Below, piece after piece: positions 45,645 to 58,300 of a stretch of DNA of 64,000 nt. Each line of letters opens with the position of its first letter. The first letter of the stretch is position 1. The notes under the pieces were generated by a model. That model did no database searches, was not told the origin of the DNA, and worked only from the letters and a program-made list of their open reading frames with translations. The stretch lies in assembly GCA_002104905.1 (NCBI GenBank), contig MCFE01000422.1, forward strand, positions 1 to 64,000, read 5' to 3'. Made by a program: the position numbers and the translations under genes. The stretch comes from Basidiobolus meristosporus CBS 931.73. Taxonomy: Eukaryota > Fungi > Basidiobolomycota.

Positions 45645-47111
45645 TCATGTGAAACATTGTCAAGCAATAATTGTTCTCATGGTAACCATTGTACCACAGT
45701 CCATCCATTTTTAGATGATTGGAACGATAGTTCCAGGTAGCCGTAAAACCCTAAATGTTATTTTGGCCAGTTTTTTGTAGAAAGTCAAGTGGACTAGATT
45801 GAGCCGAGTTTGTAGAAATAGATAATTTAACCTCAACAACATAGTGTATTAAATTTGCGCTTGAAAGTGATGTCTACGGATGATGGTTTTGATATCGCGA
45901 TCAGGAAACCGGTGTTCAGTCTTGCCCAAACGTTGGCACTGAAGACCATCATCACTATTATAGAAATCAAGGTTCATATAGATATCACTAAAGCAATTTA
46001 AGATATAAGCATGCGCCCAACTACAGAGATATGCGAAAACCGGGCTTCAGTTCTACTCTAGATGCGACAATATAAATAGCCAATAGTTACTTTGGGCCGC
46101 GCTCGCCAAAGCAAAATTCATATAGACCAATGTAAGCTACCATGATTGTTTGTCGTGGAGTGATGATCTGTTGGTAAAAGCCCCTCAGCTTCGACTCATC
46201 CTCACTGGCCATCAATTTACCATTTTTATGCCGAGTGAACTTCAGTAGGTAGGGTAGGGATGAGGAACTGGTGCCGATTTGTGACTTGTTGGCACCTCAT
46301 CAACTCCACCAATATCATTTCACTTATGATTTGTTATGTAAACTTGGCTGTCCCTATTAACTTCATATTATGTACCTCATCTCGTTACCCCTTAAAATGC
46401 CATGCCTTAAATTCCCAAAATAGCACAGGCATGCTTCGGGTAAATATACATTCCTATTCCCCATCCTTCAGATATGATGATATGCTTGTGGAAATTTTGT
46501 GGACATAGGACAAGTCAGATCCGAGTGCATTGATTCGGGTGGGATAAATGTGCCGCGACATGATGCTGGCAAAACTTGCCTGGCATACATCTGTTAGGTT
46601 TATGAAGGTGGTGTTCCCATGAGAATATGTCGTATTAGCAGCCGAAATCTCCCGGCAGTAGCTGCGGAGTTGGGCAGAGTTGATCATCAGATGAAAATTT
46701 GGTGAGGTAAGAGGGATCCACAAAGGCCACACTATCGTGTTTTCGCCTTTAATAGGGAACTATTCCTATTCACATTGTATCAGCCCAAATTCAAATGGGC
46801 TGGCTCGTCCTCTGATCAAAGCTAATTACATGCCTTTCAAGACAAGGAAATACGTCAAATCGAGATTTTCAATCGAGGTGTGCTATGCATGCACAGCTCG
46901 GAACACGCGATGCCAATTTGGGAGAATACCTAATCCGGTCGAAGGGGATCCGTAGCAAAATAGTGGGGTATAAACCCCTGGTAGTAATACCGCTAATAAG
47001 AAAGGTGCTAAGCATGCATTCTTAGGGTTCACTGCTCAGTAAATAAATATACCTGGCCCGCCTCCAGGTGTCGATACCTAGTTGCCTTTCCTTTTTTTCT
47101 CCGGTACTGCC

Positions 47112-48065
47112 ATGTCCATCACAGCCAGATTTATTGCCGCTTCTGCCAACGAGGCTGACAAGCCAACTGGTGCTAATTTGTATGCTCGCTGTGCTTTTGC
47201 TGGTGCCGTGTGTTGTGGTATTACTCACGGCGCCCTTACCCCTGTGGATGTCGTGAAGACTAGAATCCAGCTTGAACCGACTGTTTACAACAAGGGTATG
47301 ATCGCTGGTTTCCGTCAAATCATCAAGAATGAAGGAGCGGGTACCTTGTTGACCGGATTCGGGCCCACTTTCTCGGGATATTTCATGCAAGGAGCATTCA
47401 AATTCGGTGGATACGAGTTCTGGAAGAAAACTTTTATTGATATTCTTGGACTCGAAACTGCCTCCGATAATCGTACTGCCATCTACCTCGCCTCTGCAGC
47501 CATTGCCGAGTTCTTTGCTGATATTGCTCTTTGCCCAATGGAGGCTACTCGTATTCGTCTGGTGTCCCAGCCTACATTTGCTTCGGGGCTTGTTTCTGGC
47601 TTCACCAGACTCTTAAAAGAAGAGGGCGTCATTCGTGGTTTCTACTCTGGTTTTGGCCCCATTTGCTTCAAGCAAATTCCCTACAACATGACCAAGTTCG
47701 TTATGTATGAGCGTACTTCTGAAGCCATTTACAAGACCATCGGTACCCCCAAGGACCAATTGAGCACCGGCACTCATACTGGTATTAATCTTGGCTCTGG
47801 TCTTATTGCTGGTATTTGCGCTGCTATTGTGTCACAGCCTGCCGATACTCTTCTTTCCAAGATCAACAAACAGAAAGGAGCCGAAGGCTCAATTACTAGC
47901 CGCTTGATCGCTCTATCCAAGGAACTGGGTGTCAAGGGACTCTTCATAGGTCTTGGACCTCGTATTGTCATGGTTGGTAGCTTGACAGCACTTCAATTTG
48001 CCATCTATGGTGACATCAAAAGAATGCTTGGTGCTACTCAGACTATCGAGATTTCCAAGAACTAA
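47112..48065 (+). CDS. MIR1: Mitochondrial phosphate carrier
   Basis: [45 protein letters not shown] (three Px[DE]xx[KR] repeats); [14 protein letters not shown] and KQIPY. Intronless. Confidence 0.95.
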
Positions 48066-48508
48066 ATGGGTTCTGTTGCATTTGCATGCAATTGGTCAAC
48101 ACAATTTATTCATTATCCTAATCACGTGGCCTCCAATACAACCTAACTGGGAACCACAATTTATTGTAAAACCCTCCCCTCAATATTCGGTTACGCGTAA
48201 TAAATCCACTTTCCATCCCACAAATAACTTGGCCGTCATGAATTGATATCATCAGGGACGGAACGCATGACCATCCATGAGATTCCGTGCCCTGATGTGA
48301 TGCGCTCAAAGCAAATGGCTATTTTCGAGTTGGTTGGTTGGTCGGGCCTACGTATTTTTTTGCTGGCAGCCTTTAATAATATCACGGTGGGTACAGGAAT
48401 CTATCTATGATTGTGGTGACCCCAATTGAATTTGAAAACTTTACATATTAATCGATACAAGTTACATGGCATGATATGACCCATTTGTAAAGAGAATGGC
48501 GACAAAGC

Positions 48509-48931
48509 CTACTCCGGTTTTTTCATGCTCAACACGATGTGGATGGCCGAATTGACGCGTGGGTTGGTTTTGAGATCCTCTTCCTGTGAAAATAACAACC
48601 GATCAGTATTCAATGGTGGGAGGGGATTTTAGGGGAGAGATACCTCGTCTTCGGGGATGAGATCATCCACCAATTTTACACTGGAAGTGGTGCAGTCCAT
48701 AGTCACTTGATCGTGCAGCACATCCTGTAACGTAGTTGCCAACAAGATGGCTTTGCCTACTGCTTTACCCAGACCATGTATGGTCACTGTAGGCACTTTT
48801 TGCTCTAGTAACAGGAGCTTCATGCGTTGCAGCTGAGAACCAAAGGATTGTTTACTTGATACATATATATCTGTGCTAAGAGTAGCGGGGCGTTGTGGAG
48901 CTCTCTTGCGCAATGAGTAGCTTTTCGACAT
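48509..48931 (-). CDS. POP7: RNase P/MRP subunit Pop7/Rpp20 (Alba-like, 2 exons)
   Basis: LRKRAPQRP....DIYVSSK..F.SQLQR..LL...V.IHGLGKAV.KAI.LA...T.SVKLVDDLIPEDE|EEDL....RVNSAIHI. Confidence 0.85.
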
Positions 48932-49313
48932 TACTGGAAGATGTATTGTATTGTATTCGGCGCGCAGTTTTGCCCGTGGTATTTTATTACTTATAGTCCC
49001 ACTAAACTTCGACCGATTTTTTTTCGTAGCAAAATATTTCGCTCACCTCTCGGAAATACGCGAATTCTGGAACTGGGATGATTTACCCTAAATTCGATCT
49101 TAAAATGGTGAATGCCGGAATGGGCTGGAGATCATAAACGAGGGAATGCCAATTGTTCCATCAATACTACAAGGACAGTAAAAAATTCTATTTCCTTGGT
49201 AGTAGTCCCAAGTGATACAGTAGTCATATAAATGGTAGATAGACTGAGCTGGCGGCTCAGAAGTTTATTTGAACGCGGATATTCTATGACTGCGAAGTAT
49301 GAGAAACAATGGA

Positions 49314-49514
49314 CTAGATTTTGAAGCCGTGGCTACGAAGACATTCCTTATGGGCTTCGATGAATTTTAGGCAATTCTCTTCGCCATTCTCAAAAACGCA
49401 CTGATCGCGTGCTTTCTTAGTCTCGGGACAGGCACAGCATGGCTTCAATTTCTTCTCCTGTGGTTGCTCTGGGGTGGTGCTTGTGGGCTGAGTGGTTTGG
49501 GTCTCGGTAGTCAT
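49314..49514 (-). CDS. COX17: Cytochrome c oxidase copper chaperone Cox17
   Basis: [16 protein letters not shown]...[19 protein letters not shown]: Cu-binding CC plus twin CX9C. Confidence 0.97.
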
Positions 49515-50354: not shown

Positions 50355-53300
50355 TCATTCGATAACCTTCCACTAATATTGATCAGTATCTCTTTGTTCG
50401 AATGTTCAGATATATTTAGTAACAAAAAACCTACTTGAAGGATGCTGCCATCCATCCCTCCAATGGAAAGCACATGCTCACCGTTGCAAGAAAAGGACAC
50501 GTTGGTGACGAAGGAAGAGTGTCCTTTGTAGATCTTGCCAGGGGTCTAAGAAATAAATCATGGTCAGTTCGTGCTATGTAAAGGGTTATATCAATTTTGC
50601 TTCTGATTCTCTTACATTTGCTTTGTATGCAGGATACACATGTAGGTTGACTTGTGAACGGGTATTTGCACTCACCAATAAATTTCCTCTTGGGTTTCTC
50701 GATACCGCGTAGATCTATTCAGAAAATTACTTGGTTCAGAGATTCAATGGGTGAATACAGCATCTGAATACTTACATCTCGTCCGTTCATCCAGGATTCT
50801 TGAATACCTATGGTTGGCCATCCAATGGGGCATTCAAAGGTGCTCCACTCTACATCTGACAGCTTAGATGGATGCTTTTCTTGCTCACAAGATGGGAGCT
50901 TCCCTTCATTATCACATGATCGCTTAGCCGTGAGTACGCCAACAGCACATAATCTCTTCAATCTACTCACAAAACAACAGCTCCGAATCTATGCTATTTG
51001 ACTGCAAATATTGAGAGTCACTTGACCAGTCCATTCGAATAACTCTGCTCGAGTGTCCCTAAAGAGAAGCAGCATAGTTTAAAGTTACCGACTAGACTCA
51101 TTCGGTCACCTAGAGGGTGCGTTTCTGCGAAAAAATCAAACCTGGCAGGTGCCGAGGAGTTTCCAATTCTTTGTCAAGTATACATCGATCCCGTTATCCA
51201 TCGAGAATGCTCCAATCGCAAGGAATTCGCCATTTGGTGAGTACTTGACAACATGTTGCCAATTATCCAACGTCCCAGGGTTTCTTGGTTTGATCTCATG
51301 CAACTTGGTGAGTTCTTGCGAATCCAAAATAAACACCTTTGTAGTTGTGAAGAATCTGTCGTTCAGTATGTACTGACCTAGCATGATGTTCAGGGGATAT
51401 GTACCTGATCTGTAACGGCAGTTACCGCTATTTGGGTTGCATCGGGATGAACGGAGATTGAGCGGAGCGAAGTGCCTAAGTTAACTTTACGAATCTGGAC
51501 TGGATGTGTGAATGTGAATCTGAAATATACAGCATTGTTGAAGACTTTACCATCCTTTTCTTTGACATATCCCAACGCGCAACTACTTGATCGTCAGAGC
51601 ACGTGAAAAATTCTGGCGCGTCTGGATGTACAGCCAAACCCCATAGTTCTTGCATGCGGAAGCTATCATGTGCCTGAATGAAGTAATTATCCATCATGCA
51701 AGTTAGCCCAAGGTGAGCCTATTGCTGAGTTTAGATTCACCAAAAGCTAACCATAGAAATCGGCTCTACGCTAGCTGGTTTGGTCAGTTCTATTTGATAG
51801 ATGGCTGAATCTTCAGTGCCCACCACTAGTGTTTTCTCCGTGTATCTTGTCAAAGCACGTACACTCTTCTTGACTCCTTCCCATACGATCTGTGAGGACT
51901 GGTCAGACACTTGATGTTTTATAATTCTCCCATCCTTTCCGCTACTATAAAAAACGCCACTTGTCTCCCCAGCGGACAGAACAAAAATTGCTCCCTTGAT
52001 ACAAATAGTTAGTTTGCATTCTGGCAAAGCATCCAGGCTATCTCCTTACTTTGTGGGCCTTGCTTTTGACGTTGATGACTTGGCGTTTCGTGATGTCCCA
52101 GGAGTAGATATCTCCGTCCATACACCCAGTAATGAGCGTTCCTTTATCAATATACGCGGCACTCAGTATGGTCTAATGCACAAAGATTGACTTTCGTAAT
52201 GAGAATCAAATTATTTACGAGGATGTGTATAGCAGTATCAAACCTGAATCTTCCCCTTTGGCCCGAAAATACCTCGTTTGCTGCTCAATGTCCGAGTTTT
52301 GTCGTCAAGATACCAGAATTTAAGATGCTTCACACCAAAGATGACGAACTCGGTCCTGTTGAATGGGTTAAACAATATATCCAAGACCTAATGTTGAATG
52401 GTTAATGTTGAGACAGCTCTTTACACTGGGTGATGCATCATACCAGATCAGAATGACCGCTGGTAGAGACGAACGGCTCGGCGCTGGATTCCCAGTCAAA
52501 GACTTCGATCTAATGAAATATGTGGGTATATACCGCCTCGCTTTGGAAATTCCCTGGGTCCATCTCTTACCGTATGATCCTTATCTTTACAGACAGCAAC
52601 CAAGAATTTTCCGTCTGGGGAAAAGGCAATGGCCACAACCCCCTTGTATACGGTTCCAGGTCCACATTTTAGTGTAGCCACAGGAGGCTGCTCCGGCTCA
52701 TCTGCCTTCCAAACATGAACCTTCACACCACCCTCCGGGTCAATCACCGAAGCAACATCACCAGTTGCAATGTAGGCCCCAGAAGGGTGTACCGCTATAC
52801 TGATCACATCATCGTTGTGTCCAGTGAAGAAGCGTTGTGTATTTGTACTGGGATCGTAGATGATTCCCACCGAGCCAGCGAAATATGCAAGACGTGGAGA
52901 TCCATCATGCCCAGCCAAAGTATGGATATTGTTGCGGCAGTCACGGGTGCGATATCCGTACACATGGTCCAGCTGAAGCGATTCTCTGGGTAGGCTATCG
53001 GCCAACGGGACAAATTGGCTGGGTGGATAAATGGCTCCTGTCCATGGACGATTAGCCTGAAGCCGGTTAGAATGGTATCTTCTACTTGACCAAAGATGCG
53101 CTACTTACAGCAGTGTTACTGAGGCCATCAGAAAGTGTTGCATTCTTTTCTAGAACAGATATTCAAAATTAGCCATCTCAGCTTCTTCTATAAACCTCTC
53201 TTTGAATACTTACTATCCCCTTCAACCAAGCGAAGACCAAAGTGCAACTTTCCCTCCTACACGTAGGGTATGAATGGAACATTAGCATCATAACCAGTGT

Positions 53301-53825
53301 GCACCTCAACTTTCGAAAAAGTCGTACAGATGTTTACCTCGCTTTCACTGATAGGGACCCACTTTCTAATTGGAGTTTCCAACGTTAACTCGGAGAAATC
53401 GTATTCCACCTCTCCCAAAGGGTCATCCGAAGAAAGAAAATCATGGTCCAGCAAAGTGAATTTAACCTTCCCTAACTGTGAGTCCAAACGCCAACATAAA
53501 GCCTAAAAAAGTCTCTGGACCGACCTTGGAGTCCCCTTCTGTCAGGAACAACTTGAACGTGGAGTTCCATACCGGATTCAGATTTGCGTGGATGATTTTC
53601 GACTGAACTCGCTGGCCATTTTTCCCTTGGCCCACCGTAATAATTACATAAGGGTCGGAGGAGCCTGAACAATTATGTTAAATGGTACCCGTTTATTACA
53701 ATACGCTCAGTTCAAGCTCTGGAAGAGGTGTCGAACTAACCAGTATCTTCATCCATAGGGGCCAATCCCTTGGCTTCGAATAACTTGACTTCTAAATAAG
53801 TTATCTTTTCACTCTGGACCACCAT
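50355..53825 (-). CDS. C2 domain fused to an EML/EMAP-like HELP+WD40 (TAPE) module; heavily intron-split
   Basis: Exons 1-3 encode C2: LEVKLFEAKGLAPMDEDTG|SSDPYV...NLNPVWN...LDHDFLSSDDPLG. Then PWTGAIYPPS...LQLDHVYGYRTRDCRNNI (HELP), GHNDDVISIAVHP, FGVKHLKFW...KRGIFG, ELWGLAVHP, VKYSPNGEFLAIG, GHSSRVIRMDWSSDSQYLQSNS, FECPIGWPTIGI, GHSSFVTNVSFS...GGMDGSILQ|WKVIE* (stop 50355-50357). Confidence 0.88.
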
Positions 53826-54183: not shown

Positions 54184-55378
54184 CTATTGTGATTGAGTGG
54201 CGGAAGCAAAGGCGCTTAGCACACTCTTCGCTTTACCAGAGCGAATCGCTTCGCGTGCTAGCGCCACACCCTCCTTAAAGTCGGCGGCCTTTTCGTCTAA
54301 TACAAGCAACGCAGAGGTGTTGATCAGAATGAAATCCAGGATTGGTCCCTCATATTTGTTATCCAGAATCTCATTCAAAATCTTGGCATTGTATGTAGAA
54401 TCGCCGCCGGCCACTAAACTTAGGCTGTGTCGGGGCAGCCCGAAATCGTCTGGGGATATCTTTCTCTCGGTGATTTCGCCATTCGAGAGCTCCCACAACT
54501 TTAATATTTTTTAAGGCAATCAATATGTGTAAATCAAGAAACAAGTGGATCCAGGACTTACATGTGTTTCCAATTCAGGACTGATCTCATCCAATCCCTC
54601 GGATCCGTTGACTACAAAGGCTTTTTCTACGCCCATCAGGTTCAAAGCCTCTGCAATAAGGTGGCCAAGCTGGTATGAGTGTACACCTAGAACAATCCTG
54701 GATGGTTTGGCTGGGCTGCTTAATGGGCCGAGGATGTTGAAGATAGTGGGAACTCCGATTTCCTTTCTTGTAGAGGAGATCTGTCTCATGGCAGGGTGAT
54801 AGACTTGCGAGAACAAGAAGCAGAAATTGGTCGAGTCAATGATTTCCGGAACCCTAGGAGGGGTAACATTTTCTAGGACACAGGATAGAGACTCTAGCAA
54901 ATCGGCTGAGCCAGAACTCGACGAGGAGGCTCTGTTTCCATGCTGTAAGACGAGAACGAGCTGGTTGAGTACTTAAGGTTTGGGGGCAGGTTTCATAGGA
55001 GCATACCTTGGCGACCTTGCTTCCTGCACCAGCAGCGATAATGGCGGCGGAGGTGGACACATTAAAGGTGTTGTGACCGTCACCTCCTGTGCCTACAATA
55101 TCTACTACGGAAGAAGACAGTTGAGGGTGTGAGGAAAAGTCGACATACAAGGCATGGTCACGCATCACGGTAGCACATGCAGCCACAATTTCAGGTTGAC
55201 AGTCAAATTGTTGTAGACGTAAGGAAACCAGGAAAGCTGACATCTGTGCAGGAGTAGCCCTATGTTCCATAATTTCGGTAATGGCAGCCTTTGCCATTTC
55301 CGGAGTAAAGGCCTCAGGATTAAGAACTATGGTCTTAATGATGGCTTGTGTAGCATTGTTTGGAGAAGCAGTTGCCAT
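54184..55378 (-). CDS. TRP4: Anthranilate phosphoribosyltransferase (multi-exon)
   Basis: ATPAQMSAFLVSL, VDIVGTGGDGHNTFNVST, KHGNRASSSSSGSADLL, YHPAMR, PTIFNILGPL, EGLDEISP. Confidence 0.96.
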
Positions 55379-58300
55379 TCTAAAATATTTCTGTTGCAAA
55401 TATCAATAACAAGAAAGAATTAAACCTAAAGACTTCACTAAGTGAACGAAGAGAATATTAATGTCCTTATAAAAAAACAAGTATGAACCGGCTGAGCTTC
55501 TGTTGCGAGCAAAAGGACAACACTGTTTAAAGTTATAGTCTGCTTCTTCTCAAACCCAGGCTATTAAAGCCAATCAACACGAACACAATTCATTGTCGTT
55601 AGTGCAACTATCAGATTTAACAAATCCAGTCTACATAGAACACTGGGTGTCATCATTGCAAGAAATGACTCATAATGGTTCCTGCCACCAAACAGGCCAA
55701 TCTTATTTGATTAGTTGATTTATAGAAATTGAATGTGATAGGGGTCAGATCAAAAGCTAAATGCACAATTGTAGCGGGGCAAGCCTTCATGCCCAAGTGA
55801 TCCAGCCGCCAGCATAAATGATAGGGTATTTGACATCCAGCATTGGGTCCAAGATTAAATTCGGTCAAGATTCGCATCGATCCACAATGACTCAACCTCC
55901 ATTATTGTGACTCTATCTGGCACTTCGCACACGATGGGAAGCCCCGGTCATTCGACATCGAGTATACCATCAGGAAAGATGGAATTTGTGGTGCCAGCAT
56001 TCGGCTTGGTGGTGGACAACACCATCACATTGAGGGAGCACAATGATGGAAATTGTAAGATATAACATGAGAATAGATGTTGAGTGGCTATCCCTCATGG
56101 AATACCATGTATGGATCCAATAGTGTTAGGGCAACCAGATTCGAGATTAGATTTGATATACTATGGCTTACTTTTCTAAACACCAATTGATGGTTGAACC
56201 AACGGAGGTTTGATATCATTGGTATGTGCTTAGCTTTTAATCACAATCACCTCCACGGCTCGATAATATGAATCATGTGTACATAAAATACGCGTATACC
56301 ATTGGACATAGTGGTCGTAAATGACATATTCACAGGCTCAATCATGCGAAGAGAAATAGAAACAGAGTTCAACCGGCGGTCCATGTTACAAATTGCAGGA
56401 CATAGTTCGGAACCTCGCGGCTCTGAGACCTTATTCTGCAGACTATGGCTCAGTCTACAGATACTTGGCTAATATACATTTGCGATCTCCATAAAGCATA
56501 TTTGCACTATGCGAATTCTCAACGCCGGCGGGTAGCAAGTATACCATTGGATTTCTAGCCTACTCCAACTAGTAGTCCAGATACTAACAGAGCGCGTCAT
56601 ACTATATTTAATTATATGGAAATGCCATATAGGACCTTCCGTTTAGGAACAAAACGGCTCATTCTTTGACAACAGGAAAGTAAAACTGTAAATAACATGT
56701 GTCGACTCAGACTTTACAAGCGGTATGCTACAGAACCTCATGACAATGAATAAACTTGTAAACTTGCAAACTTGCGAACGTTTCAGTCAGATGGTGTCTA
56801 TCTGGATCCTAGGCCTAATTTTCTATAACTAACCTCGCAACAGCAGCCAGTAAATGAGGGTAGACACGCCATGCTGCCTTTGGTGTTTGGTTAGGGTTTT
56901 GGCTAATAACGAAGCTTCATCTCCTTACAACTGGTACATGAAACTAAGAGACCATTTAAATTCACATCTATTGACATGGCTGCATTCCAGGTGATAACTA
57001 TATTGTACTGGTTCTCGGACACTATGTTCTAGAACGGCTGATACTCGGTACAAGAGTTCCACCGGATTTTTAGCACACCTGCTTTGATTCTGACCTTGGT
57101 ATGAGTGGTAAAAATGGGGCTGCGCATGTGGGTACGGTAACACAGCCGAGGGAAATAGGTATACATATTCACACCTAACATATGGGTACGAACACGACTG
57201 GCACAGGTAAGAATAGGGCAATCAAAGCGCTCATATTTGTAATAGGAGTCGTGTCCGGGTAAACCAACAATGACAATGATGATATGTTTTTGTCTACTCA
57301 TGGTCTAGACCGAGACCGTGAGGTTGTTGCTGGTATGTGGAGGACACTCTTTGAGGCATGTCTAATTTTAGTAACCCAGATACGGATTCTTCGGGCATTT
57401 GTGACGTACCCTAGCAGGAAAGCATTGCCAATTGGACTGGTAGCAATTTAGATTAGAGGTTTGGGGAATCCCGCTTGGATGACGAATAGAACCAAGATCA
57501 AACAGTCAACATGAAATTGATTTCATAAAATTGGCTTGACATAAAAGGTAAGCAGTCATTCACACAGTACCTGACTCCCACTGACCACATGAATTCCATG
57601 GCAACACCAGTCAAATCCATCTCCATTGGATTGGTGACCAGGAGAATTAGATGCTCTATCGCATCAAGACATTCTGAAGTAATACCTTAGATAACTACCA
57701 TGCTCCACACTTGTATCTATACCTGGCTTCGATTCAATCCAGGCCCCATTCAATCATCATGGGCCAATCGCTGGACTACGACCACAGTCAAGGGGATTTG
57801 AGGTTATTTGAGGTAATGTGGTGTGCGTATTTCGTGATAGTATGGCAATTTGTTGGACCATTAATCCTCTGATAATTGGACTCTTGAAAGGAATGGAATC
57901 AGTATACTGGTTCTCGTGTAAGTTGTACCAGCCAGAGTAGCGCACAAGCAGATAGCAGAATATTGAATTGGTGAAAACGGGCCTAGGAAAAGGAGAATAT
58001 TTCGTAGAAGGAAATATTACCTCCAATTCCTCCATCCGTACCACCTTCACAGACCGTTCATCGACTGTATAGCAGGTTTGATTCATGCAATCATGCTCGG
58101 TCAAAACCTTGGTGAAGTCAGTAACAAACAGTATTTTAGGTTCATATATACATCTCCGCTTCCCGGTATCTATTTAGCACATAGCGATCGAGTCTAGATT
58201 ATTGAACATTGCATATGCTTGCATCGTCTGGGCTTCTAGATTCAATCTTCGTTTCATTATGTGCGGATTGACGCTTTGTGTACAACTCGACGCCTCTCGA

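Follow-up and report, generated by a model that had tools for sequence, protein, structure and literature searches.

A single gene of the fungus Basidiobolus meristosporus CBS 931.73 is predicted to join an N-terminal C2 domain to one complete TAPE, the module of a HELP motif and tandem atypical β-propeller that characterizes EML proteins. The gene lies on the minus strand at 50355..53825 of the window, a 64,000-nucleotide stretch of contig MCFE01000422.1. The best explanation for this architecture, which we hold at a probability of about 0.45, is that it would allow Ca2+-gated membrane recruitment of a tubulin-binding module.

EML proteins have been studied almost only in animals, where EML4-ALK cancers and the cortical malformations linked to EML1 and EML3 have drawn attention to them. 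A literature search covering C2 with EML or HELP in fungi and Basidiobolus with EML found no published description of the C2-EML architecture, as a preliminary description of this locus had also supposed. C2-EML sequences are already public under generic names, and the architecture has apparently never been studied. Its value at present is as a hypothesis generator: a natural variant swaps the microtubule-binding and trimerizing N-terminus of animal EMLs for a C2 domain of the Ca2+/lipid type, and the swap is kept in deep fungal lineages and one protist. Being conserved, it offers a simple, monomeric two-module protein for asking what a membrane-delivered TAPE does, and it raises the possibility that Ca2+ controls EML function in organisms other than animals.

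Gene structure

The gene consists of 18 exons and 17 introns, with a coding sequence of 2352 nt for 783 amino acids. Translation starts with an ATG at 53825 and stops with a TGA at 50357-50355, exactly where the preliminary description had placed the gene ends. On the minus strand, the exons run 53825-53741 (exon 1), 53664-53525 (2), 53466-53338 (3), 53256-53214 (4), 53149-53109 (5), 53056-52571 (6), 52509-52444 (7), 52387-52244 (8), 52172-52050 (9), 51994-51752 (10), 51673-51551 (11), 51494-51405 (12), 51336-51142 (13), 51058-50971 (14), 50903-50776 (15), 50714-50616 (16), 50545-50435 (17) and 50372-50355 (18). Every intron is of the GT..AG type and measures between 52 and 83 nt, and a single open frame is kept throughout. 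Introns 3 to 5 (53337-53257, 53213-53150 and 53108-53057) match the junctions first proposed near 53330, 53230, 53140 and 53030.

The spliced translation is identical, residue for residue, to ORX89794.1 (UniProt A0A1Y1XWS2), deposited as "WD40 repeat-like protein". With 18 GT-AG exons and this identity, the proposal of one spliceable gene for a C2 domain, a HELP motif and a complete TAPE holds. The motifs on which it had been based are all present: exons 1-3 carry MDEDTG, SDPY and LDHDFLSSDD, exon 6 carries YGYRTRDCRNN, exon 8 carries GVKHLKFW and exon 14 carries GHSS..DWSSDSQYLQSNS. The accompanying concern that automatic annotation could break up or overlook the gene proved unfounded, since it was deposited whole, as a single product of 783 aa that starts and stops at the same positions.

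Two alternative acceptors were considered and rejected. Exon 3 begins at 53466, where all orthologs back the acceptor; the first AG in intron 2 lies 9 nt upstream and would start the exon at 53475 and add K-L-G, residues missing from all orthologs and from the deposited protein. An intron-12 acceptor at 51372 would shorten the intron to 32 nt and insert 12 residues that no ortholog has.

A gene model of this kind could also arise if two neighboring genes, one with the C2 exons and the other with the HELP-WD40 exons, had been wrongly merged. Retention of intron 3, 4 or 5 introduces an in-frame stop right after the C2 domain, so unspliced RNA could in principle give a C2-only product. Such a merger is nevertheless extremely improbable. 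The C2 exons and the HELP exon are separated by only ~280 nt, the mini-exons 4 and 5 are kept in frame among orthologs, and the same fusion recurs among independently annotated orthologs: in both Basidiobolus paralogs, in another four fungal genera and in one protist. In Neocallimastix, moreover, five independent intron-less contigs bearing UTRs and A-runs align to a 5.9-kb genomic gene in 14 collinear blocks, which places C2 and TAPE together on one spliced mRNA there.

HELP motif and β-propellers

The HELP motif (aa 169-211, exon 6, 52862..52990) is recognized by PF03451 at 6.5e-12, with 45.2 bits against a cutoff of 27 and 45.9 bits for exon 6 alone. It is followed by a first EML β-propeller (aa 219-486, exons 6-10, 51794..52840; Beta-prop_EML, PF23409, 4.6e-61, 207 bits) that covers profile positions 1-266 of 267 and a second (aa 510-781, exons 11-18, 50364..51646; Beta-prop_EML_2, PF23414, 4.6e-105, 351 bits) that covers positions 1-266 of 266. 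When exons are scanned one by one, exon 6 gives HELP and Beta-prop_EML, and exons 13, 15 and 17 give Beta-prop_EML_2. The similarity to the TAPE of EML1 (4ci8) extends end to end, both in phmmer (1.7e-93 across residues 55-655) and in Foldseek (E 8.2e-57, TM 0.89, rmsd 2.5 Å, identity 32%). The protein therefore has both sequence hallmarks of the EML/EMAP family, a HELP motif and a complete tandem atypical β-propeller.

With one TAPE per polypeptide, the protein resembles animal EML1-4. It shares with EML5 and EML6 the absence of a coiled-coil; those proteins differ in having three consecutive HELP-TAPE repeats and no C2 domain, whereas the 783 residues here hold one HELP, one TAPE and a C2. 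Orthologs in B. ranarum have been automatically named "EML-like 5", a name best explained as a best-hit artefact, since there is one TAPE and the fungal clade stands apart from the EML5/6 clade in a phylogenetic tree.

To our knowledge, tubulin binding by a TAPE has been demonstrated only for animal EMLs, and identity to EML1 is limited to 32%. The module could thus be a generic WD40 scaffold unrelated to tubulin, and the protein an adaptor recruited by Ca2+ or membranes for something else. We regard this as very unlikely in view of the end-to-end, EML-specific homology and the very strong scores for HELP and both EML propeller profiles. The next-best structural relatives after EML, CFAP52 and CFAP251, are also microtubule-bound axonemal proteins.

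The C2 domain and its predicted calcium-binding loops

Exons 1-4 (53214..53825, minus strand) encode the C2 domain, which spans aa 10-113 by Pfam and aa 7-132 by the eight strands of the AF2 model. On the full-length protein, C2 (PF00168) scores 6.5e-24 (84.6 bits against a cutoff of 22), and the exon-by-exon scan detects it twice, at 6.3e-9 for exon 2 and at 1e-4, also above cutoff, for exon 3. Structure prediction, one of the checks proposed in the preliminary description, gives a confident eight-strand domain (pLDDT 87) with a strand order that suggests type-II topology. Foldseek returns a probability of 1.00 against many C2 structures, and the best matches are Ca2+-bound C2 domains with TM values of 0.74-0.79. 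At the sequence level, the domain matches the C2 domains of Syt7, Syt1 and PKC-alpha/gamma with the loop-3 Asp triad aligned, and E-values against Ca2+-dependent lipid-binding C2 domains are 1e-13 to 1e-17. Like synaptotagmin C2A, the PKC-alpha/gamma C2, plant CAR, the Trichomonas C2 and cPLA2, it is predicted to be an eight-strand β-sandwich with acidic loops 1 and 3. Instead of a kinase, a lipase or a transmembrane anchor, the Basidiobolus C2 has a TAPE joined to it.

The predicted Ca2+-binding loop 1 (D25-E26-D27 ... D32; 53654..53753) is split by intron 1, and predicted loop 3 (D82-H-D84 ... D89-D90; 53422..53448), in exon 3, aligns to D225/D227/D233 of Syt7 C2A. Sequence alignment recovers all five acidic ligands, the equivalents of Syt1 D172, D178, D230, D232 and D238, in agreement with the original observation that the domain carries the Asp residues typical of Ca2+-binding C2s. 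D32, D82, D84 and D90 occupy canonical Asp positions. By the usual D-x5-D spacing, the first ligand position falls on E26, which has D25 and D27 on either side. Having Glu rather than Asp there, in a loop 1 that is one residue longer than in Syt or PKC, makes Ca2+ stoichiometry and affinity uncertain. A further difference from Ca2+-dependent lipid-binding C2s is that the domain, which has a net charge of -9, shows no obvious polybasic β-groove.

Across C2-EMLs, D32 and D82 are invariant, 16 of 17 sequences have an acidic residue at position 26, D or E occupies position 84, and conservation of D89 reaches at least 90%. Every Zoopagomycota sequence and Anaeramoeba keep all of the acidic ligand positions; Neocallimastigomycota keep most of them as D or E and carry D84E and a Leu at position 90. 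At 78% identity to the B. ranarum ortholog, against 72% for the remainder of the protein, the C2 is no less conserved than the sequence outside it.

Many C2 domains with acidic loops work via proteins or independently of Ca2+. In the present case the C2 may be a constitutive, Ca2+-independent lipid- or protein-targeting domain that localizes the TAPE scaffold with no Ca2+ switch. The non-canonical register of loop 1 and the two ligand substitutions in Neocallimastigomycota fit this possibility, as do structural matches that include the Ca2+-independent C2s of PKC-epsilon/eta and intersectin-2. However, one would expect the retention of acidic ligands just described only under selection for metal binding, and a C2 with no Ca2+ switch seems rather improbable to us.

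Linker and proposed function

A flexible linker (~aa 132-166; 53003..53217, minus strand) connects the two modules. Its coding sequence begins in the last part of exon 4, takes in exon 5 and finishes early in exon 6, and is interrupted by introns 4 and 5. The linker comprises roughly 22-35 residues, has pLDDT values <50 for residues 132-153 and carries a net charge of 0 (3 K+R, 3 D+E). No coiled-coil or basic region was found in the 783-aa protein, and in the AF2 model nothing ahead of the TAPE, before residue 167, is helical. In EML1-4, by comparison, this part of the protein is an N-terminal coiled-coil trimerization domain and a basic, Ser/Thr-rich linker; the Basidiobolus protein has a C2 domain at residues 1-132 and an uncharged linker. 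Animal EMLs bind the microtubule lattice through the coiled-coil and basic region, and their intact TAPE associates with soluble tubulin (PMC4761370). Animal EML1-6 are without a C2 domain, a point on which the preliminary description and the literature agree (PMC4761370).

With no helix before the TAPE and no net charge in the linker, microtubule lattice binding cannot be assumed. The original idea of a tether between membranes and microtubules is consequently weakened on its microtubule side, where the lattice-binding module of animal EMLs is missing; Ca2+-gated membrane recruitment of a tubulin-binding module is better supported than a membrane-to-microtubule linker. In such a mechanism, a rise in Ca2+ would cause the C2 to bind anionic phospholipid and move an otherwise soluble, monomeric TAPE onto the plasma membrane, the nuclear envelope or vesicles. 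The membrane-held TAPE would then bind α/β-tubulin dimers, as the EML1 TAPE does, and many copies concentrated on the membrane would replace trimerization as the source of avidity. Local capture of tubulin or microtubule ends could in turn bias microtubule assembly or anchoring at the membrane.

It is also conceivable, if unlikely, that the C2 itself contacts tubulin or microtubules instead of membrane. C2 and TAPE would then be two tubulin sites in a soluble, possibly Ca2+-modulated MAP and would functionally stand in for the basic region and trimerization domain of animal EMLs, whose microtubule-binding module occupies the exact place of the C2. There is precedent in dysferlin, whose C2A and C2B bind α-tubulin and microtubules independently of Ca2+, and in synaptotagmin I, whose C2A and C2B are reported to bind tubulin (PMC2853571). 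A dysferlin C2 domain is, in addition, the top PDB sequence match of the Basidiobolus C2. The domain matched, however, is a C-terminal one (chain residues ~1580-1715) and not C2A or C2B, conservation is concentrated in the Ca2+/lipid loops, and a net charge of -9 would be unfavorable for binding acidic tubulin tails unless Ca2+ bridges the two. Dysferlin and synaptotagmin resemble the Basidiobolus protein in coupling C2 to tubulin or microtubules (PMC2853571), but in them the C2 itself binds tubulin and membrane anchoring is achieved otherwise, whereas here a separate TAPE is covalently attached.

Taxonomic distribution and origin

Each Basidiobolus genome contains two paralogs with the C2-EML architecture, which also occurs in Syncephalis and Piptocephalis, in Neocallimastigomycota and in the protist Anaeramoeba. 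Judging from these sequences, the architecture is kept under selection across Basidiobolus, Zoopagomycotina, Neocallimastigomycota and Anaeramoeba. The rarity implied in the preliminary description does not stand, and a fusion specific to Basidiobolus or to fungi is ruled out by the Zoopagomycota, Neocallimastigomycota and Anaeramoeba members.

The EMLs of Chytridiomycota (Quaeritorhiza, Synchytrium, Blyttiomyces, Obelidium) fall within the same fungal EML clade, which is well supported (SH-aLRT 99). Their N-termini are long, of low complexity and without a Pfam domain, and hence without a C2; these four proteins rule out that all fungal EMLs carry one. Among the matches listed (150 representatives), there was no EML from Dikarya or Mucoromycota. 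Metagenomic EMLs with N-terminal EF-hands occur as well.

A broader and fairly improbable reading is that C2-TAPE is the ancestral fungal EML, possibly older given Anaeramoeba, and that it seeds or anchors microtubules through Ca2+-gated concentration of tubulin on membranes. If so, membrane clustering would do the job of coiled-coil trimerization in animals, the EF-hand EMLs would represent a parallel solution, and Ca2+ control would be a general, overlooked trait of non-animal EMLs. A quick tree requires at least three state changes for the C2 fusion and places Anaeramoeba on a long, unsupported branch. The Zoopagomycota members document that EMLs persist in this non-flagellated group.

Gene Model and Transcript

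The C2-EML locus is a real gene and stands as one gene in public annotation. On the minus strand, its frame runs from an ATG at 53825 to a TGA at 50357-50355 through 18 exons, separated by introns that are all GT..AG (17/17) with lengths of 52-83 nt (mean 66 nt). The gene ends proposed in the preliminary description, 53825 and 50355, match this model exactly. The locus was identified by an exhaustive representative search with exon 6 as the query, followed by a word search with the best match as the query. Both searches returned Basidiobolus proteins sharing the C2-HELP-TAPE layout, among them ORX89794.1 (UniProt A0A1Y1XWS2) of B. meristosporus CBS 931.73, deposited under the name "WD40 repeat-like protein". 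Its gene is 50355-53825 of MCFE01000422.1 (GCA_002104905.1, 78,048 nt), with DNA identical to the window, and translation with exon 3 starting at 53466 yields ORX89794.1 exactly. Since these coordinates were deposited as one gene, an early fear of fragmented annotation proved unfounded.

The boundary of intron 2 and exon 3 (53466-53476, minus strand) contains two AG acceptors, both in frame and separated by 9 nt (...cacag/ttagggaag/gtt...). Use of the upstream acceptor would insert K-L-G in a bottom loop of the C2 domain; this version of exon 3 was rejected, as the residues are missing in all orthologs and in ORX89794.1. Alternative splicing could occur at this pair; the orthologs favour the downstream acceptor.

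Strong, if indirect, evidence suggests that C2, HELP and TAPE share one transcript in B. meristosporus. C2 and HELP are bridged by mini-exons 4 and 5, both kept in frame in orthologs, and the fusion has been annotated independently in B. ranarum (twice), Syncephalis fuscata (C2, 1.4e-26), Piptocephalis tieghemiana (C2, 1.4e-19), Neocallimastix, Piromyces and Anaeromyces. The Neocallimastix gene covers 5.9 kb of genomic DNA. Five short contigs, independent of one another (four from JGI samples and one from an SRA run), contain an identical, uninterrupted 786-aa ORF with UTR-like flanks and terminal A-runs, and match the genome in 14 collinear blocks. These contigs are therefore spliced mRNAs that carry C2, HELP and TAPE together.

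Domain Architecture

The domains composing C2-EML are textbook domains. By exon, Pfam places C2 in exons 2 (6.3e-9) and 3 (1e-4), and exon 6 holds HELP together with the first of the EML propellers; matches to the second propeller fall in exons 13, 15 and 17. Exon 6 alone matches 4ci8, the EML1 TAPE crystal structure, at 8.7e-20. In full-length ORX89794.1, Pfam assigns C2 to aa 10-113 (6.5e-24), HELP to aa 169-211 (6.5e-12), Beta-prop_EML to aa 219-486 (4.6e-61) and Beta-prop_EML_2 to aa 510-781 (4.6e-105), with end-to-end coverage of both propeller profiles. By phmmer, aa 167-782 align with residues 55-655 of EML1 (1.7e-93). An AlphaFold2 model of the full-length protein, built with 21 homologs as input, has a mean pLDDT of 87 and finds 4ci8 as its best PDB match (E 8.2e-57, TM 0.89, rmsd 2.5 Å, 32% identity); the next matches, to tandem-propeller proteins of the axoneme (CFAP52 and CFAP251 among them), are much weaker. 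Residues 132-153 fall below a pLDDT of 50, the linker at aa 132-166 has a net charge of 0, and no helix N-terminal of the TAPE appears in the model.

Modelled alone, the C2 domain forms eight strands (pLDDT 87), and the structures it matches best are those of C2 domains with bound Ca2+ (Trichomonas C2, plant CAR4, Munc13-1 C2B, cPLA2 and E-Syt; TM 0.74-0.79). Its first strand is the one preceding loop 1 and an extra strand lies at the C-terminal end, a strand order that suggests a type-II topology. Sequence matches include dysferlin, Syt7 C2A (5.7e-17), Syt1 and the C2 domains of PKC-alpha/gamma. In these alignments, D82, D84 and D90 align with the loop-3 Asp triad and D32 with the second Asp of loop 1. 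One extra residue in loop 1, relative to Syt and PKC, puts E26 at the first ligand position of that loop, with D25 and D27 on either side. Across 17 C2-EML sequences, D32 and D82 never vary, position 26 is acidic in 16, position 84 is D or E, and conservation of D89 is at least 90%. All Zoopagomycota sequences retain the complete D-E-D...D / D-x-D...D-D set, and the Neocallimastigomycota proteins have E84 and L90. The predicted spatial clustering of these acidic residues is read from the alignment, not from model geometry, and a rival explanation is that the C2 serves as a Ca2+-independent targeting domain.

Possible Function

In animal EMLs, the propellers bury the HELP motif between them, and the intact TAPE associates with soluble tubulin (PMC4761370). 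Compared with these proteins, the Basidiobolus C2-EML has the TAPE but neither lattice-binding element (N-terminal coiled-coil and basic region). The membrane-to-microtubule linker first envisaged for this gene therefore gives way to a narrower reading. In this best-supported reading, a Ca2+/lipid-type C2 would bring a tubulin-dimer-binding TAPE to anionic membrane via a flexible tether, and concentration at the membrane surface may stand in for trimerisation. The membrane-delivered TAPE might capture or seed microtubules, or merely sequester tubulin. Contact between tubulin and the C2 itself is a serious rival, for which there is precedent: the C2A and C2B domains of dysferlin contact tubulin, and those of synaptotagmin I are reported to do so (PMC2853571). 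Another rival assigns the TAPE a role unrelated to tubulin. C2-EML may prove useful as a naturally occurring test of TAPE function, and it hints that EMLs outside animals may be under Ca2+ control.

Distribution and Evolution

The gene and its orthologs are held in GenBank/UniProt under automatic names ("WD40 repeat-like protein", "EML-like 5") with their Pfam matches recorded. Recognition of the C2-EML architecture as a conserved family appears to be new; full-text literature searches found no description of it.

A TAPE-only tree (IQ-TREE quick search, with SH-aLRT support only and without bootstraps) places all fungal EMLs in one clade (support 99) with three strongly supported subclades. 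C2 is present in Zoopagomycota (two Basidiobolus paralog pairs, Syncephalis and Piptocephalis) and in Neocallimastigomycota. The Chytridiomycota members have long low-complexity N-termini, and no Pfam domain was found in the 180-385 aa extensions (low-complexity or Q-rich) of P0165, P0175, P0184 and P0143; either C2 was lost or 5' exons were missed by annotation. A word search with only the C2-linker-HELP part found a 795-aa protein (P0289) of the anaerobic protist Anaeramoeba flamelloides that combines C2 (4.1e-24), HELP and both EML propellers. It shares the LSSDD loop-3 motif of the B. meristosporus protein and has a longer linker of ~85 residues. Together with one metagenomic C2-EML fragment, P0289 falls outside the fungal clade on long, poorly supported branches. 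The tree needs at least three gains or losses of C2, and the fusion may be either ancient with losses or of repeated origin.

Two metagenomic single-TAPE EMLs from eukaryotes, P0084 (aa 66-94) and P0114 (aa 27-56), have an N-terminal EF-hand instead of C2; the EF-hand_6 match is above cutoff in P0084 (27.2 bits) and below it in P0114. Judged from these matches, TAPE would have been joined to a Ca2+-binding module a second, independent time.

Paralogs and Neighbouring Genes

The neighbours of C2-EML are ordinary housekeeping genes. Upstream lies anthranilate phosphoribosyltransferase (54184-55399, minus strand), whose stop is only ~360 nt from the C2-EML start codon. Downstream are COX17 (49314-49514, minus strand) and, within 47082-49514, an Rpp20-like gene and a mitochondrial carrier with a single 327-aa ORF on the plus strand. 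The second B. meristosporus paralog, P0157 (750 aa; 1501-4912 of L009, from MCFE01000352.1), is deposited 33 residues short. By tblastn, the C2 strand and linker absent from the deposited model (LNPVWNSSF..., GQLRFGLRVV...) are encoded in the paralog DNA. A full C2 is therefore kept in both paralogs, and the model probably passes over small exons. Next to each paralog lies a Mito_carr gene, suggesting a segmental duplication, and since B. ranarum also has two copies, the duplication is older than the split of the two species. Both B. ranarum proteins, P0001 and P0156, carry the automatic name 'Echinoderm microtubule-associated protein-like 5'. This name misleads, since EML5 contains three TAPE repeats but lacks a C2. 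The N-terminus of P0156 is extended by 26 residues that are missing in all other orthologs, probably because its start was mis-called.
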